Shown one piece after another: positions 49,794 to 59,358 of a DNA stretch of 64,000 bases. Location: NCBI GenBank assembly GCA_964199315.1, contig OZ116707.1, positions 8,680,001-8,744,000 on the forward strand, read 5' to 3'. A program made the position numbers and the translations under genes. Under the pieces are notes generated by a model, which worked only from the letters and a program-made list of their open reading frames with translations, was not told where the DNA came from and did no database searches. The DNA is from Orbicella franksi (lineage: Eukaryota). Numbering within the stretch: the stretch's first letter is position 1; every line of letters begins with the position of its first letter.

Positions 49794-52700
49794 ATGTCGG
49801 ACAAAGGTGGTCGAAAACCAAGAGCCAGGAATCTCTCCAGAACTTTTATACTTCTGAGATCAGATGATTCGAATAGTCACGTTCCTAGATCAGCAACGCT
49901 TAAGACACTCGAGGCAAGTGGACGAATAAAGGAGATTGAATTTAGCAATAATGCGACATCGCAGCACATCACTGAGTTGGTCATGAATGCCTTTGGTCAA
50001 CTTAACCAATCAAACATTTCCAGGTACTAGAACTGAAGCTATAACATAAATATCACTTTTGGTCTTTACAACAAAGACTTAATCCTGAGATTTGTGTTGT
50101 ATTGTTATCAATATCTTCTTTTTTAGGCTTGTCTTGTATAAGACTGTTGGAAACACATCCGTTTTAAGCCGGGCTGGTAGAGCTGGAAACATCTGCGGAG
50201 ACACCCTCAAGTGTATTTATAAATCTCGCGCAAAGGTGTTCCTTCGCTTAGAGGACGGTAAGAACATCTAAATCGTAAGCGACGTAACATTGAGCATAAG
50301 AACTCGGTATCCTGTTCGGCTGTTAATGTAGCTGTCAAATCACACTTTTATTTTACAAGGTAGCATTATTGGTGATCATATTTGAACGCAGCTAAACGCT
50401 TTGACGAACGAGCCATCGATAAGATAATTGGTGTATCTTTGTGATTCAATGAAATGGAAATAAATGGCCTTTATTCTTTAAAGCGCTTCTGAAATATGTA
50501 ACTGGAATATATATGTTAAGGTGGCTCCCTATAGTTTTACGATCGCACGCGCACTGGGGACGAAATTTCAAGCAATCTGCACGCGCTCGAAGGGAAACGT
50601 CAGTGTTTTTCTATATTTTATTACGTCAACATGAGCACAAAAAGCAAAACTGACAGTGAAATTTCTCGAGGTTCCTTCGGTGAAATTCCGTAAAATTTGG
50701 CAGACTGTTAATAAATATGTTACTTTAGTCGGAACTCGTTTTCCAGGGAAATCTATGTCCATTTTTTTAGCAGCGGTAAAAGACGTAAATCTGAAAAAAT
50801 CTAAAAAACTGCCTTTACAAACCCTACTTTTTTCGTGTTTAAAATTTGTGTCCTGCTGGGTGCGATGTGCTGTGAAAATTTTGGAAGATTTCACCGAAGG
50901 AAATTTAAGAAAATCGCAAATAAAGCCTTAAAAACGGCAAAAAACACATTGATTTGGGCATTTATAATTTAAGACTTAAACCCAAAATTTTAACATAGAC
51001 AGTACTAAAACACTATTTAATCATTGCTTATTACATTTGGCAAGTTTGAGAGGACTGGGTGAAAAACACAAATGCAAAAACAGCATTCAAAACATAACGC
51101 TTGTGCGTGCAACGCCATAAATGATTACCCTATGGAGCCACCTTAAGTGGTACGGTGCGCAAGAAAACCCACGCGTGACGCGTCGATTCATGAGTTATAC
51201 ATCGAGTTACGCATGATCTGTGTGACCATTTGATCTTATGCATGTAAAGCAATTGGATTTCATTTTTTTCACAGAAAGTGGAGATGGTGCAGGGCCAAGT
51301 AATCAAGAAGCCGGCCAAAGTCAAGTTAAAGGTTCGTTAGAGTTGTTTATTCTATTTCTAAACACTAATTTGAGCATCAACTTAAACAGTTGTCTATGAA
51401 GTATTTGCTGACCAATTTTAAGTGATATACATATATTACATAGTTTTTAAATTCTTGATGCACAGGAGGAAATGCAGCAACTCAACAAATTGAGATTGAG
51501 GATGATGATTCCAGTACTGCCCTAGCTCCACAATTCGGTATGGTGCTTGTATTTGTCCTGTTGGTCATACTAGTCATATTGATGTGGTTGTTTGAGTGAT
51601 GGTCAGTGCATTGCGTTTCTTTGTTGTGTGACAGACAAATGGCATTCAGTACGTGAGAAGTCATGTTGATGGTTTTTTAGTGATAATCATGAAGCATTGC
51701 ATCTAGAACCCAGACAGCTTTCACCCATACAAAAAGGTTGTGTGTGCTACGACTGCCTTCCGGAACAAAAACATCGTTTCATGACAGAACCCAATCAGAT
51801 GCCGTATCCAAATTCGAAAGAATTGGAGCAATTTATTACAGGCAAATAACAAGTCTTAAAACTTCCATACAAGTCAACTGTTACATTGTACTTGTGTGTA
51901 TCTTAATTGATAGTTGTGTTGCAATTACGAGATAAGGTTTTTAATTATATATTTACCTCACTCTTCAGATGATGACAGTGACGATGATTTAGGGACGCCA
52001 GTCTTCTCGTCCACTCCCACCCTAGTGCCCAAATGTACATGTAAATCTTCTATCGTGATAACATGTCTACTTATAAGCTCAAGTTGTAATATTTGGAAAA
52101 GGTATGTCTGATGTATAGGCATTTAATATATTAAGACTTCAGATCTTAAGCGTTACCATTTGTGATAATGAGAAGTGCTTCATTTCGGAAGCCTCATGCC
52201 AGGACAGAGAGGATAAGTTAGGGAGAGAGTATTGATTACAGCTGTAGTTGCAAGTTATTCAGTTATGGGCAATGATTTTTTTCAACTTTCTTTTCAAAGA
52301 TTCTGTACAAAGGAAGGTGGAAAAGATTGTGGAGACATTTTATAGTAAGTCAAGATATAGTAAACAAGCACTATGACAGCTGAATGTATTAATGTTCTTG
52401 ATATTCTTGACTTAATAATAATTTATTATTCTGGCATCAGCATTTGAAAGATAGATTTGAGAAAAAATTAAATGGGTACTCAATTGTATAGTGTTGGTCA
52501 CAAAATAATTCCTATGTTAGAGTAAAAAGAAATAAATCAGCACCTTTCATATTTTGGGGTTTGATTTGTAGATTCAATCACTATCAGTGGTGCAGTGACG
52601 AAGGATGTTAATCAGAGTGCTGATCAGGCAACAGAAGGTAAATGTTGATGATCCTGACCAGTACTGTTAAGAAAAATATAACTTAAGTTAATTGATGTTT

Positions 52701-55700
52701 CATTAAAGACTGTGATGATATCAATATTGTGCCACAATCACACATAATTACAAGTGTCAAGAGACAACATGTATAATTACTCTGGTCACTAGTATAAATA
52801 AGTAATTAAGCCGTCATTCCTAAAAAATATCTCACGATCAGGCACTAAAGAAAATTATTATATGACCACCTCTGTAAGTGGGCAAGATGAACCGAATATC
52901 ATGCTGTGATTAGCTTTGTCACGGTCATAAACACGCAAAAAAAAAAAAAGAACTTGGTCAATATCCAGTCATCTATCTCAACCTCCTGTTGGTCAATAAC
53001 CCATATTTATCATCAAGGCTTCGGTCTGGGAAAAATTTTGAGGAGCCCAAAGTTACGTAATATTGATTAAATCACGATCAAGTGCCCATCATTAATACGC
53101 TCATCAATGAAAAAGCTTTTTTTTAAAAAATGCAGATAGACCAAGGAACTCACCAGAATTACAGCAAAGTACAGTCTTAACATTTTAAAACCTGTCTGTG
53201 GTTACAGTTACACAATGTGAAAATTTATGTTCAAAGATTAATGCACTTTAAATGACAATCCAATTACAATACACAGTACTGATTTAAATAATCACATTGA
53301 TTTCCATTTTTAGTTGGAACTGTAGAAGAGGAGTGCAATCATCTGATAGGTGCTGAAGCAAGTGAGTTGATAAGTGCAATTTTTATCATCAATTTACAAG
53401 TCACTTTAAGTTAGGTTTTAAATTTTTGCAGTGAACCCAGGTGATGGCTCAGGTGAATCATGGTATTGCATCCTAACCCCTTTGCTGGCACTGCACTACA
53501 CAAACATCTATTAAATAGAAAACTGGCCTAACAATTCTTCTGCACTCTAACAACAATGAGAGTCCTAGTACTAAACTGTGGTTTTGCACTCAGTGCATAT
53601 TTGTCTCATTATTACAACTATACATACATTTCCTCAGATGAATCAGCAGGACCTGCATATGATGTGCAGCTCTTGACAAAGTTGATGGAAGCGTATAAAG
53701 TACCACAAAGGCTCCAGTTTCTCTGCCTTAATGCTCAGGAAGTAAGTGATAGCAAATTCACGTTATGATAATTATAGATTTGTCAAACAAGAACCTGAGG
53801 TATCGACTGTGAATGCATGTTCATGACACACCAAACTTTTTTGCTAATAGCACATAAGTGCATTAGTACACAAATTTTGAAAGTGAATATGAAGATCTAG
53901 AGGGTTTCATCTCGGACGGGGCTGCACCCCCTGCATCTCCCTCTAAATCTGCCTTAGAAGAATAAGCATGTGAAGTTTGCTTGGGCCTGAGTGGTACTCA
54001 AAAAAAGAACTATCTTATTTTATCCCATTAAGTTGTGATGACTGTTTGATTATGATTATTTAGAAGTATTTGCGGCAGGGCAGATTGCTTTAAGTGTGTA
54101 CATATTTTATGCAAAGTAGGCCCAAGCGAGGGAGTGTAAACTAAATATCTGTCAAAAAGTTGTGTTATGATGTTATTAAGCTTAATTAGTGTTATAAAGT
54201 AAAAATCCCGGATTTAAAAAATACATGTATAAGAGTACAAATCCCCAAAACACGTAGAGGTATATGCGGGATATAATAATTTAACAGCAGAGTTTCTTAT
54301 AATTTCTCAGATGAGGAGGCAGAGCCATGAAGATTGCACTCCACTAGTGCTTCTTCGATATATCCCAAGTGCAAAGGCCATTAGCATTATTAGGTGGGTA
54401 TTAAAGATTTTTTTTAGGAATACAACATGTAGTACAACTAATGCAGCTATTTTCTTCATTTTCTTGATAAAAGACACTGTGTTTTCGTTATGACAGCTTG
54501 TCGTATCTTCTTGTTCACATGGTCATGCATGTTTTACACTGTAGTATTTAACCATTTTCCTTTTGTTGTGAACAATACCGTATAGGAGCCTCATTAACTA
54601 TTACTTTTTTTACCTTTTTGGTTCAGATCATTAATGACGACAATAGATCTTTTGCCACAGCTGGCCAATTGCTATGTACATGTAGCTTTGAAAGGGAGCC
54701 AGTTTGACGAGGAAGGTAACTAATTTGTGGTATGCTACAATTACATATGTTACAGGGCTCAAAATAATTTTTGAATGGTGGCCAGTGGTGTTAATTATAA
54801 TTTGAAAGTGAGGTACCTGACCAGTCAAAATGACTGCCATACCAAAATTTTGTCTGGACAAATATTCATTTTGGCCAGACACTGTCCATTGACTGGCTGT
54901 TATGAGCAAGGCTGATGTTGCTTTAAACTAATTCTTTGTATTATTTGATACTACCTTACAACACTTGCAAAAAGGTGATGTGTCCTTTGATTGCTATATT
55001 GTAGCATGTGGAAAGCAGGGAATCTTCAACAGTGGAAGTGACATCCAGGTGCACATAATGCATCCAACAGCATCGGCAGCTAGGATGGTTGTAGGAAACA
55101 TTTTGACAGGTGATCATAATGCAATACTACCTTGCTTGTGTATGTGTGTGTGTGTCAAATGTTAATTTGAGATAAGAGGTTATGTCACGAGTGGCCCTCT
55201 TTTAGCCTTGTTTAAAAAGTGCAAATTGTAAATTTCTTGAGAAAGAAACTACCAAAGCAGAAGAGATGAAAAGAATCCCCTTAGTAAAAACATTATGCAG
55301 TGGTTCCTGAGGTTTGAGAAGAAATGATATGTACATGTAGGTTGTGAATGGGAAGTAATCACATGCTTAGACATGCTAATGGAAGTGTTATATTTAAAAT
55401 TCCCATTGAAGGAGAGGAAGACAACTTCCTTGTTCAATTGAGCGATTCAATCCAGGATGCTCAGGAAGCTGCCGAGGCTATCAAAGCAAACAGGTAAGAC
55501 TAGTATTATTAGTTAGGTTTCCTGTATTGAATGCTATTTTGGCTTAATGAATGTAGAAGTAATACTTTTGTCACTTTTTATTAGAAGGAAGGTAGAGTTA
55601 AGTACTGTTATTATAAATGAATTGAGGAACGCCTGTTAAGTTTTCTGCTTCTACACTGTATCTCCTCCACTATAATAAAATATTCTCCATTCTCTCCAGT

Positions 55701-57884
55701 AGTAATTGTTAAGCGAGTAGGGAACATGATTTATTCTTTTTGTGATGTATTCTTACATGCATTTTAATCATGCAAAATGAATCTTAAACAGCAAAAGTCA
55801 AAAGTATGACTTATTGCTTGTGGAACATTAGTGTCATTGGTGTATTAAACAGTAATCATTCATGATTACATAGTGCATGAGAGTCTTTTGAAAGAAATTT
55901 GTTCTAGATGACACTTTTCCAATCTAATCTGCCAAATGCAAGAACTGTCACAATTTCTGTTATTACAACATTTTAATTGTAATCAATATTAATACAAACT
56001 GGTAAATTATTACAGGGAACTTTTACAGCAAAACAGAGTAATACGGAGGCGACAAGAGGCGGAATTATTACTATCGCTAAGTTTCAATTGAAAACGCTGA
56101 TCGTGCTCAATTTTTAACCAAATTTGAAAATATTCAATGGTACAGACATGGGTAGAAATTTGAGGGAAATTGACATCGAAAAGGGATGAAACAGGTTTGA
56201 AAGTTCTCCCGAACATTTTCAGGAGCAGGAAGACCAAAGAAAACATGCAGAAGAAACCCAAGAAAGTCAAAATGAAACAGTTGCTGATGATGACGAGGTA
56301 AGTGTTATTCCTTACAGTTAAAGTGTACCCCTCAAGAATACATAAATGAATTCATTACTTGAATATTGAACCCACTAGCCTTTTCAAGACTGCAATCTTG
56401 TAATTTTTTCACTATTGCACTCGCTATAGTCATTTCAAGATTCAATGATATCAAATTCATTTTTTTAGTTAATTATAAAACCCATTATATGTACATGTAT
56501 ATTCGGGTAAAGTAGCACTGACAGTAATCAATTCATCATTGCATTCTCGAAACATCTAGTGCATTCAAAATTTGAATAATCGATTCATTAAATAAAATGT
56601 AATATTGAGGGGTATGCCTCAATTGCTTGTACTGCAATATTTAATTTAATCATACCAATGCAGAACGTATTTCGAGCCACATTTCCTACCATTTGCATAA
56701 TCCACAGGCACTAACCACAGGTAAGCAAGTTAGGTAAAAAGTTAACCTGTTGATTATTATTGTAGCTAAAAACTCATGAAATTATTTGTTTTAACTCCTT
56801 CCAGGTTCGACGCAAAAGGTTGTTAGCTTTAGATGCCCAGGTACAAATTATACTCTAGTAATTATCATAGATTAAAGAGACTCTGTTCGAGCGTGGGAAG
56901 GTAAAGCAAAACTTCCCTGTTCTAACAGCGTTTTGTGCATGAGCTGCTAGATGACATGACATTGGGCTCCTTCCAGCAGGGGCAGAAACAAATAAATTGG
57001 TCACTAAGCATGTGAACATGTATGGGTTAAAGTAATATCAGTTACGACCAGTCAGTACAAAATACGCAGTGATTAAAGCGTGATTTTAAGAGGTTTAAAC
57101 AAGGGACAGAAGAAAGAAATCTATTTTGGCGACAAAGCCAAAAACTGATGCATGTATTTCATCATGCAAAATAGTCGTAGCCTCAAAGAGACCTTTGATT
57201 TGAATTTCAATTGTATTTCTAACACCTGAACAGTTAAGCTAAAGTAATCGGTCAAACACTAAGATTTGTTATCAACTTCAAAGGATTGTTACTGAAGTTT
57301 CAAAATACATCATGGTAAAGGTAAAGACACTCAAGGATGTAAGACATTTTATTTCTTTGTTTTAGGTTGGCACTTCGAAACGCCCCCGGGAAGAGAGTTC
57401 TGTGGCCGATGATAGTGGAACAGTAAGGAAGTTGTTTGGAATCCAATACGTTTTTCATTGTTTGGGCTAAAATAATTTTATGATTGTTTACATCATCATC
57501 TACCCACTTTCCCCTTCCCTTCACAGTTAAAAAATAGATGAACCTAATCACCTTAAATCAATGCAGGGGGCACCATCGTTCATTCGTCCATAACAGAGGC
57601 AAGAAAAGTAACTTAAATTTCTAACTTGCCCAATTGCCAAGGACCTAGGCAAGTAATCTGCAATCTAATTTTAAAAAAAAGGAAACTAAGACTTGCCCAG
57701 GGCAAGCAAAATTTGAGTGCTGCTTGTCAGAATGGCAAACTGGAAAAAAAGGTTTTTCTCGAGTCCTGAGTTTCTTCACTTTCTGATACTTAATGGTACT
57801 CTTAACTGGGCTTTATCATCACTGAAAATTAAAAGTAAATACATTCTTCTTTGATTTTATTTTCAGGTTACATTCAGGATATAA
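49794..57884 (+). CDS. Multi-exon gene of unknown function (~18 exons, ~504 aa model)
   Basis: Exons 49794-50023, 50127-50257, 51275-51331, 51466-51537, 51969-52040, 52300-52344, 52572-52637, 53314-53361, 53638-53741, 54311-54393, 54627-54715, 54975-55109, 55242-55311, 55371-55493, 56016-56076, 56223-56297, 56805-56840, 57867-57884. Phase-consistent (1515 nt). Needs one non-canonical donor (56077 CTAAGT), one weak acceptor and one 59-nt intron. Confidence 0.65.
50520..51142. mobile_element. TTAA MITE (Kolobok-type), 623 bp, in intron 2 of the partner gene
   Basis: TTAA|GGTGGCTCC...GGAGCCACC|TTAA. Confidence 0.85.
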
Positions 57885-57915
57885 CTTAGCTGTATCATTG
57901 ATAAATCAGTGAGAA

Positions 57916-59358
57916 AATGCTGGTTAAATATTAAATAAATGAACAAATAAAAATAAAAAAAATAGAACTTTTAGCATTTCACCACTGAATGAAAAGAATC
58001 TTTTTGACCTTTTTGAAACTACTTTATTACTACACAATTACCTTAGTTACCTTAGTTATCAATGATATGTAGATGATTAATGGGTCAATATTTTTACCAA
58101 AATGCAAATCCATGTAGGAGTTTAAGACAGTCGATTTAGTTTTGTTACAAGTATTGCATTAAGAAACTTTTAAAGTTGTATGAAGTTGATAGTTTAACAG
58201 GTTGGCCATTGCAATCATTGCATCTGTATTTCAAAAACATCGAATCATTGCTGTGTAAATCGGCGAAAGAATAAACTTGTAATCATTGATATATATGTTG
58301 TTTATTGCTGAGTTAAATAAACAGTTTCACCTCCTGTTACACGCTTTGCTGATACACCACCATATTGACTTAGTTTAACACAAACGGAGTGCCTGAATTA
58401 CAAAATGACCCACTATTAGAAGTCAATTTTTTATTTCGGGCGAGGACAGGTGGTGGGGGGAGGTGAGGGAGAAAGGAAGCATACGTTTGTGATTGAACCC
58501 ACCAGTCAGATTTAACTGAGTCAGATATTCAACTACACCGATTGACTTCAGAACACTTGCCTGAATCAGATCTTTAAGAGCCATTTTTAGTTGCTATGCC
58601 GGATGCCTTCCACAACTTTAAAGAGTCCTAGCGGTGCTGATATAGAACAAGTTTAGTCCTTTTAGTCCTCTTAAAGTGCGAACTTTTATTACTCTTAAAG
58701 TTCGAAATTAAAGGACTCTTAAAGTTCGAAATTTAAGGACTCTAAAAGTTCGAACTTTTAGGACTGTTAAAGTTTGAACTTTTAGGACTGTTAAAGTTCG
58801 AACTTTAAGGCCTCTAAAAGTTCGAACTTTTAGCACTCTTAAAGTTCGAACTTTAAGGACTCTAAAAGTTCAAACTTTTAGGACTGTTAAAGTTCGAACT
58901 TGAAGGCCTCTTAAAGTTCGAACTTTTAGGACTGTTAAAGTTCGAACTTTAAGGCCTCTTAAAGTTCGAACTTTTAGCACTCTTAAAGTTCGAACTTTAA
59001 GGACTGTTAAAGTTCGAACTTTAAGGACTCTAAAAGTTCGAACTTTAAGGACTGTTAAAGTTCGAACTTTTAGGACTCTAAAAATTCGAACTTTTAGGAC
59101 TCTTAAAGTTCGAACTTTAAGGACTCTAAAAGTTCGAACTTTAAGGACTCTTAAAGTTCGAACCTCTAAGACATTTCAGAATCTTGAAAAATTTTAAGAA
59201 TTATTAGGGAAGTTGGAACTTTTAGGACAACAGAACTGTATAGGGGGTCCTGACAGTAATTGTAACAGTTTAAATTGTTGTAGTTACATAGGGGACTTTT
59301 AAGTAATTTAAATAAGTTTTTTACGTAAGGGACTTTGCCCAGCTGCTGATATTGATCC
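57916..59358 (-). repeat. Right TIR (1443 bp)
   Basis: Reverse complement of 36557-38074. Confidence 0.97.
58670..59164. repeat. 24-bp palindromic minisatellite in the right TIR (~20 units)
   Basis: Same unit as in the left TIR, reverse orientation. Confidence 0.95.

Follow-up and report, generated by a model that had tools for sequence, protein, structure and literature searches.

PIF/Harbinger is an established example of a DNA transposon with two genes, in which a Myb-like accessory protein is encoded beside the transposase, and CACTA and MuDR elements likewise carry two genes. Merlin elements, whose transposases are of the IS1595 type, are treated in the literature, as far as it could be searched, as single-gene cut-and-paste transposons; only the transposase is described, and no second gene. 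Here, we describe a gene found in a 64,000-nucleotide stretch of the genome of the coral Orbicella franksi (assembly GCA_964199315.1, contig OZ116707.1, positions 8,680,001 to 8,744,000 of the forward strand). This whole stretch is called the window, and positions are counted from its first letter. The gene (49794-57884, plus strand), referred to as the partner gene, lies head-to-head with a Merlin transposase gene and is probably an undescribed helper gene of Merlin transposons.

Both genes are located inside a 22.8-kb element (36557-59358), which is bracketed by terminal inverted repeats (TIRs) and by an 8-bp target site duplication (TSD), AACAAGTC, directly outside both tips. The left repeat (36554-38074) pairs with the right one (59361-57916) at 89.7% over 1531 nt. 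The outermost 28 nt are the same at both tips (36557 and 59358), the inner 463 nt are 99% complementary, and the 1.5-kb TIRs as a whole are rich in short tandem repeats. The last exon of the transposase matches the profile PF12762 (DDE_Tnp_IS1595) with 37 bits, above the cut-off of 27, which, along with the TIRs and the TSD around the partner gene, places that gene within a Merlin/IS1595 transposon. The start codons of the two genes (49602 on the minus strand and 49794 on the plus strand) diverge and are separated by 191 bp, the distance given in the original prediction, which had been made from the letters of the window alone. This spacer is presumed to be a shared promoter region, and is near-identical (100% over 835 nt; 99.8% by blastn) in a second copy located 213 kb upstream. 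At the other end of the partner gene, poly(A) signals are present at 57930, 57946, and 57952, all within the right TIR.

The pairing of the two genes recurs throughout this genome. A profile of exon 1 of the partner gene detected 15 exons, while the last exon of the transposase gave 98 matches. Thirteen of the 15 exon-1 homologues lie no more than 30 kb from a transposase-exon match, whereas at most 1.2% of the genome is that close (binomial P ~1e-23); counted per family, the linkage is 7 out of 7. The orientation is divergent in 11 of the 13 linked copies, and each exon-1 subfamily is paired with a single transposase subfamily: three copies of the type of P0042, a spliced paralogue discussed below, are found with the 56% group, and the remaining three subfamilies are accompanied by the groups at 61%, 54%, and 55%. 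Three lineages in other coral assemblies (L058, L059, and L060-62) have the same arrangement, with a transposase on the minus strand and exon 1 on the plus strand, 0.4-1 kb apart. In L060, where exon 1 is 51% and the transposase 67-75% identical, counterparts of exons 2, 9, 10, 11, 12, and 14 are colinear across 9.7 kb, which means that the family of the window is not alone in having the long architecture. As far as sequence comparison goes, these data show that homologues of the partner gene travel with matching transposase subfamilies. In public data more widely, the exon-1 profile yielded 47 clusters of exon-sized open reading frames (ORFs), nearly all of which end at the same splice position; no named protein was among them, only exon-sized ORF fragments.

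Over the longer term, the ratio of nonsynonymous to synonymous substitution rates (dN/dS) is low. Compared with L055, a 75-80%-identical copy from another assembly, it is 0.26 over 174 codons, none of which is a stop, and compared with an old paralogue in this genome it is 0.32 over 130 codons, with one stop in the compared codons; dS in the two comparisons is 0.37-0.48. Judged by these codon comparisons, the partner gene is shown to have been under purifying selection. Recurrent linkage and purifying selection, two marks of an accessory gene, were thus both found, and the suggestion in the original prediction of an accessory gene linked to Merlin transposases is supported by the 13 linked copies, by the matched subfamilies, and by the recurrence of the pair in this genome and in three lineages elsewhere. 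The locus resembles PIF/Harbinger, CACTA, and MuDR in that a second gene is kept beside a DDE transposase through the diversification of lineages and under purifying selection. It differs from PIF/Harbinger in belonging to the Merlin/IS1595 superfamily, in showing no Myb/SANT or other DNA-binding family, and in that its conserved module is a predicted beta-grasp domain.

The ORF of the partner gene consists of 18 exons, which together make up 1431 nt and 476 codons with zero internal stops in a frame check. The features of the element and of the gene are as follows.

36557..38074, no strand: left terminal inverted repeat, pairs with the right TIR; TSD AACAAGTC just outside
47374..49602, minus strand: Merlin (IS1595-type) transposase gene with 3 exons, from ORFs; last exon matches PF12762
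49603..49793, no strand: 191-bp spacer between the two start codons, from the ATG positions
49794..50023, plus strand: exon 1, 230 nt, encodes the basic N-tail and the N-terminal half of the predicted beta-grasp domain; exon end (…SR) conserved, 47-cluster family
50127..50257, plus strand: exon 2, 131 nt, encodes the C-terminal half of the predicted beta-grasp domain; exon 1-2 splice seen in paralogue transcript P0042/L037
50516..51146, no strand: non-coding high-copy repeat of ~630 bp in intron 2; at least 40 copies (85-88%) elsewhere in the genome
51275..51331, plus strand: exon 3, 57 nt, phase 1-1; joined to exon 4 in L056; only canonical in-frame acceptor
51466..51537, plus strand: exon 4, 72 nt, phase 1-1; in L056; an RNA loose end at 51968 carries the end of exon 4
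51969..52040, plus strand: exon 5, 72 nt, phase 1-1; RNA; last base is T in the window, G in both the RNA and the older assembly
52300..52344, plus strand: exon 6, 45 nt, phase 1-1; X5/X11 contigs and L056
52572..52637, plus strand: exon 7, 66 nt, phase 1-1; X5/X11 contigs and L056
53314..53361, plus strand: exon 8, 48 nt, phase 1-1; joined straight to 53638 in X5, X11, and L056
53638..53741, plus strand: exon 9, 104 nt, where the C-terminal alpha/beta domain begins; RNA; homologue in L060
54311..54393, plus strand: exon 10, 83 nt; RNA; CGA at 54356 is TGA in the expressed allele (X5, L056)
54627..54715, plus strand: exon 11, 89 nt; RNA; 93% amino-acid identity to the old copy at C10:2.46 Mb
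55005..55109, plus strand: exon 12, 105 nt; RNA; homologues P0079, P0080, and L060 at 47.5%
55412..55493, plus strand: exon 13, 82 nt; joint 55109 to 55412 in X5 and X11; L056
56016..56076, plus strand: exon 14, 61 nt, the long helix begins here; RNA; the donor that follows is CT in the window
56223..56297, plus strand: exon 15, 75 nt, acidic helix; X5/X11 contigs and L056
56805..56840, plus strand: exon 16, 36 nt, basic RRKR motif; X5/X11 contigs and L056
57366..57422, plus strand: exon 17, 57 nt, KRPR motif; X5/X11 contigs and L056
57867..57884, plus strand: exon 18, 18 nt including the stop codon; joint 57422 to 57867 in X5; P0085 ends in its residues
57916..59358, no strand: right terminal inverted repeat; inner end 32 nt past the stop codon of the partner gene

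RNA support was assessed in two raw-read runs and two contig runs over 51950-57949; the contigs of a cDNA run (X5) and of a poly(A) run (X11) come from separate studies. A further contig, L056, from a Joint Genome Institute (JGI) metatranscriptome (2489 nt), was found with a junction-spanning pattern. Across these three data sets, every junction from exon 3 through exon 18 is backed by spliced contigs. X5 and X11 contain GT..AG joints at all predicted junctions of exons 5-18, with the tail of exon 4 on a loose end, while L056 joins exons 3-17 exactly as in the model. L056 itself keeps the last intron unspliced and extends into the terminal repeat, and its 5' end lies inside the ~630-bp repeat of intron 2; the 17-18 join is shown by a JGI product, P0085, which terminates in the residues of exon 18. 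The joins of exons 1-2 and 2-3 rest on phase, on the acceptor at 51275, which is the only canonical in-frame acceptor for exon 3, on the RefSeq model XP_020607563.1, and on the spliced paralogue transcript P0042/L037, in which exons 1 and 2 are spliced and the transcript continues beyond exon 2 to a donor site. Two candidates were rejected on the basis of the RNA: a 21-nt exon at 53432-53452, which is skipped by the joint from exon 8 to 53638, and starts of exon 13 at the stronger-looking acceptors 55341 or 55371, since the joints place it at 55412.

Exons 3-8, of 57, 72, 72, 45, 66, and 48 nt, each run from phase 1 to phase 1, and their product is acidic (25 Asp and Glu per 124 residues; isoelectric point, pI, of 4.05). 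The chain of roughly 18 exons read from the window, including its run of symmetric phase-1 micro-exons of 45-72 nt with acidic coding sequence, was accordingly borne out by an 18-exon frame and by spliced RNA for the joins of exons 3-18. The ~630-bp repeat in intron 2 resembles a short interspersed nuclear element or a miniature inverted-repeat transposable element, and dispersed repeats with many copies at ~70-83% identity are also present in introns 15 (56321-56640) and 17 (57598-57778).

The protein of 476 residues comprises, in order, a basic N-tail, a predicted basic beta-grasp domain, an acidic linker, a conserved alpha/beta domain that spans exons 9-13, an acidic helix of considerable length, and a short basic C-terminal tail with two motifs that resemble nuclear localization signals (NLS). 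The pI is 11.7 for the N-tail, 10.0 for the beta-grasp domain, and 5.1 for the whole protein, and the acidic linker, encoded by the six phase-1 micro-exons, is probably disordered. Searches were run exon by exon or with contiguous public records (pieces of L056, P0083, P0084, and P0085), and the joined 476-residue model was used for the frame check, for composition, and for tblastn against selected loci. Exon-by-exon sequence and profile searches of the PDB returned nothing useful, while word searches with P0042, the open frame of exon 12, and the C-terminal piece found fragments only.

Exons 1 and 2 are predicted to encode a beta-grasp (ubiquitin/PB1-like) domain. The spliced paralogue P0042 (37% identity to the partner protein, E = 1e-15) was modeled with AlphaFold, with 30 rows of exon-1 homologues. 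The model has a mean predicted local distance difference test (pLDDT) of 71.8, a predicted TM-score (pTM) of 0.64, and the order b-a-b-a-b-b-a-b. Its Foldseek neighbors are almost all beta-grasp domains, namely SAP18, the ubiquitin-like (UBL) domain of TBCE, PB1, RA, UBX, and USP7 (E 0.03-0.2). Neighbors in the ESM Atlas include unnamed sponge and chordate clusters, PB1 and SAP18 clusters, and one chordate cluster with a HECT domain in 27% of its members. Profiles of the ubiquitin family gave no match to the N-terminal domain apart from ULD_2, at E = 0.12 and for one paralogue. The likeness to PB1 and ubiquitin-like beta-grasp domains (Par6, NBR1, p62, MEKK3, the UBLs of USP7, SAP18, and UBX) thus resides in the predicted fold, while the sequence profiles gave no match. 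The ubiquitin-like fold originally proposed for the N-terminus is supported at this level, by the model of the 37%-identical paralogue and its nearly exclusive beta-grasp neighbors. Of the likeness to HECT/G2E3 proteins that was proposed along with it, the single Atlas cluster is what stood, as the HECT domain PF00632 was not matched in Pfam searches.

For the C-terminal piece, all feature neighbors in the ESM Atlas are FAF1/UAS, UBX7_N, or FAF2 clusters, at 0.76-0.82, a range that counts as a lead. The UAS p97 adaptors (FAF1, FAF2/UBXD8, and UBXN7) are therefore alike in language-model features, but no UAS profile, PDB, or Pfam match was found, and the beta-grasp domain is N-terminal here and C-terminal in the adaptors. 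The UAS profile PF21021 does find the host's own gene (C14:9.39 Mb), and not the partner gene. The residues that lead from exon 12 into the helix may also form a gap-free alignment with human FAF2, at the end of its UAS domain and the helix after it. The ubiquitin/p97 flavor noted for the C-terminus in the original prediction is accordingly kept as a lead only, carried by the Atlas neighbors and not by the Pfam UAS profile. One further identity, a Merlin partner of the CCDC106 type, was tried and rejected, as the 13 matches to PF15794 all lie elsewhere and none falls in the gene studied here (C10:8.73 Mb) or near its homologues.

Taking these observations together, we consider it reasonably likely that the gene is the second gene of a stony-coral Merlin clade and acts as a protein-protein adaptor for the transposase. 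The adaptor role is inferred from the combination of a beta-grasp module, a disordered acidic linker, a helix, and an NLS-like tail. In such a scheme, the beta-grasp module would dock or oligomerize partners, and through the C-terminal module a host machine of the ubiquitin/p97 type may be brought to the transposition complex, to assemble or remove the transposase. A bolder version, in which the Merlin clade would carry its own ubiquitin-pathway module, made up of a p97-adaptor-like protein (beta-grasp, UAS-like domain, and helix) and, within the same element, a TRAF-like RING ligase, which would jointly mark the transposase and extract it from a very stable post-transposition complex, seems a long shot to us. 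It is suggested by analogy with the disassembly of the phage Mu transpososome, which is driven by ClpX, except that here the transposon would encode the machinery itself.

A conserved partner gene would imply that part of the Merlin superfamily, treated so far as single-gene, needs or exploits a second protein in the way of PIF/Harbinger. This bears on the recognition of autonomous Merlin copies, on what to co-express when a Merlin transposase is studied heterologously, and on the cleaning of coral gene sets, in which the gene, whole or in fragments, passes for an ordinary coral protein without characterization. With a partner of ubiquitin fold, perhaps next to a TRAF-like ligase, a connection between transposition in eukaryotes and the ubiquitin/p97 system also becomes open to testing.

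A number of findings weigh against the adaptor reading. No Pfam family was found on any exon, on either contiguous piece of L056, or on the RefSeq protein, and PF21021 (UAS), PF00789 (UBX), and PF00564 (PB1) gave no match even at E values up to 10; with RefSeq calling the protein uncharacterized as well, the label of an orphan gene was a fair one. The beta-grasp fold is taken from a paralogue, with middling confidence and middling Z, and the AlphaFold model of the C-terminal part has a pLDDT of 60, falling below 50 in the domain and being confident in the long helix only. Among exon-1 homologues of other assemblies, L036, L053, and L054 have no transposase within 10 kb. In the RNA examined here, nothing was found that joins exons 1-2 with exons 3-18, the joins of exons 1-2 and 2-3 being uncovered, and no expression was seen in raw poly(A) reads of one sample. 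Only one full-length copy is present in this genome. Furthermore, six of the seven exonic differences between the window and an older assembly (GCA_002042975.1, from Orbicella faveolata, here L057) are non-synonymous, and a changed splice donor and a nonsense codon occur in different alleles.

The donor change affects intron 14 (56077), which starts with CT in the window and with GT in both the older assembly and the 77%-identical old paralogue. RNA contigs splice precisely at this site, and the expressed copies therefore either differ from the window or are spliced non-canonically. Because of the mutated donor, the copy in the window is probably no longer fully functional. The nonsense change is a C to T substitution at 54356 in the expressed allele (X5 and L056), by which exon 10 gains a stop in place of an Arg codon; the window keeps the Arg. 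Given the mutated donor and the nonsense allele, the mostly non-synonymous differences, the lack of expression in one sample, and the small number of copies, the gene looks recently unconstrained.

In a comparison of 49600-58254 of the window with L057, 34 single-base differences were counted, of which 20 are G in the older assembly and A, C, or T in the window; RNA contigs agree with the older assembly at 8 of these. These G-biased differences may reflect another haplotype or a systematic base-calling bias in one of the assemblies, which bears on the CT donor at 56077.

The other members of the family in this genome are few. The second copy, 213 kb upstream, is near-identical, is truncated in intron 2, and keeps exons 1 and 2 only. 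The third is an old fragment at C10:2.46 Mb, and a search of the genome with the C-terminal piece found the gene itself and this old copy only. The old copy (L030, G000:C10:2462600-2471113) comprises exons 11-15 with their introns at 77% nucleotide identity; a 6.4-kb insertion interrupts it, and no transposase lies less than 20 kb away. Its exon 11 is kept far better than the flanks (93% at the nucleotide level).

Of the other explanations, the one that survives best would make the protein a DNA-binding helper, comparable to the Myb-like protein of PIF/Harbinger, with the N-tail and the beta-grasp domain binding the repeat arrays of the TIRs and recruiting the transposase. The high pI values of these two parts (11.7 and 10.0) and the long TIRs full of short tandem repeats would suit such a role, as would the precedent of PIF/Harbinger as a two-gene transposon. 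However, no DNA-binding family was matched in Pfam searches, the whole protein is acidic at pI 5.1, and the structural neighbors are protein-binding modules, so that we consider this explanation unlikely.

The gene could instead be a passenger that originated from the host, as a gene or as a chimera of exons, was captured once by a giant, cargo-carrying Merlin element, and is simply inherited with it; like the TRAF-like gene of the element, it would have no role in transposition. Its recent evolution looks neutral, a single full copy exists in this genome, the C-terminal piece has feature neighbors of a host type (FAF1/UAS), and the element carries other cargo, a zf-TRAF ORF being found upstream of the transposase in L058 as well. 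A single capture without function fits poorly, however, with a pairing that has been kept in at least 7 sublineages, whose transposases are 54-77% identical, mostly in divergent orientation and with subfamilies matched. The dN/dS of 0.26-0.32 across deep divergence and the placement of the intron after exon 1, conserved in 47 clusters, also argue against a passenger, which we regard as rather improbable.

The boundaries of the gene could also be drawn differently. The JGI products of at least three contigs (P0088, P0089, and P0091, on contigs of 2489, 978, and 1246 nt) have their first residues encoded by the part of intron 2 that precedes exon 3, where an ATG is in frame. Because of these products, an isoform that lacks exons 1 and 2 is conceivable, as are two separate genes: a ubiquitin-fold gene of exons 1-2 (~124 residues), followed by a gene of exons 3-18 that starts in intron 2. 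The separate 124- and 119-residue models listed by RefSeq, the truncated upstream copy that retains exons 1-2 only, and the lack of a read joining exon 2 to exon 3 in the RNA examined would all agree with two genes. On the other side, phase 1 is shared by the end of exon 2 and by all of exons 3-8, a single canonical in-frame acceptor is available at 51275, and XP_020607563.1 unites both parts. In addition, the diverged L060 lineage has both parts colinear on one strand, and the paralogue transcript extends past exon 2 to a donor. A split into two genes is therefore doubtful at best. A second nuclease, i.e., a C-terminal PD-(D/E)XK domain that cuts the second strand in the manner of TnsA of Tn7, is dismissed as highly improbable, as the weak Pfam match to YhcG_C that suggested it (E = 0.062 and 0.094, ~13 bits, with two overlapping queries) scores 13.6 bits against a cut-off of 32.5, and the motif residues vary among homologues: in place of the Lys of the D…(D/E)xK motif, L055 and the old paralogue have Gln and L060 has Met, with the Asp region of L060 replaced as well.

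An existing record covers the same gene. XP_020607563.1 (P0084; LOC110046219), an uncharacterized protein of Orbicella faveolata, shares nearly all splice junctions with our model, and its source DNA (GCA_002042975.1, L057) is 99.4-99.7% identical to the window. It differs in a 17-residue insertion at the border of exons 2 and 3, for which the window has no canonical in-frame acceptor, in bridging an assembly gap at exon 10, and in retaining the last intron, and it is not annotated as transposon-borne. Within this source DNA (L057:1-12445), a segment that matches 47625-52947 of the window is present twice in tandem beside long runs of N. This tandem segment is probably an assembly artefact, and it gave rise to the extra short RefSeq models of 124 and 119 residues.

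Several other observations were made around the relatives of the gene. The zf-TRAF ORF of L058 (L058:1697-2107) is on the same strand as in the window, and the three-gene order of TRAF, transposase, and partner gene may have been kept in this second lineage, from a different assembly. In L059 (L059:14757-18484), ORFs with matches to Pox_VLTF3, DUF2738, and Rho_N are located 5-8 kb downstream of exon 1 of the partner gene; this cluster could be an insert derived from a large DNA virus or a Polinton-like element. In L036 (L036:8666-14000), exons 1-2 of the homologue form a tandem duplication with a period of 3161 bp, with no transposase nearby. Finally, five G000 loci of the 60-61% transposase subfamily (C1:35099234-35104002, C14:11458032-11462837, C9:25952457-25960883, C8:360399-365120, and C15:19073129-19077929) each contain, besides the full last exon of the transposase, a partial inverted copy of it at a distance of 4-8 kb; the end of the transposase gene may lie inside a long terminal repeat.

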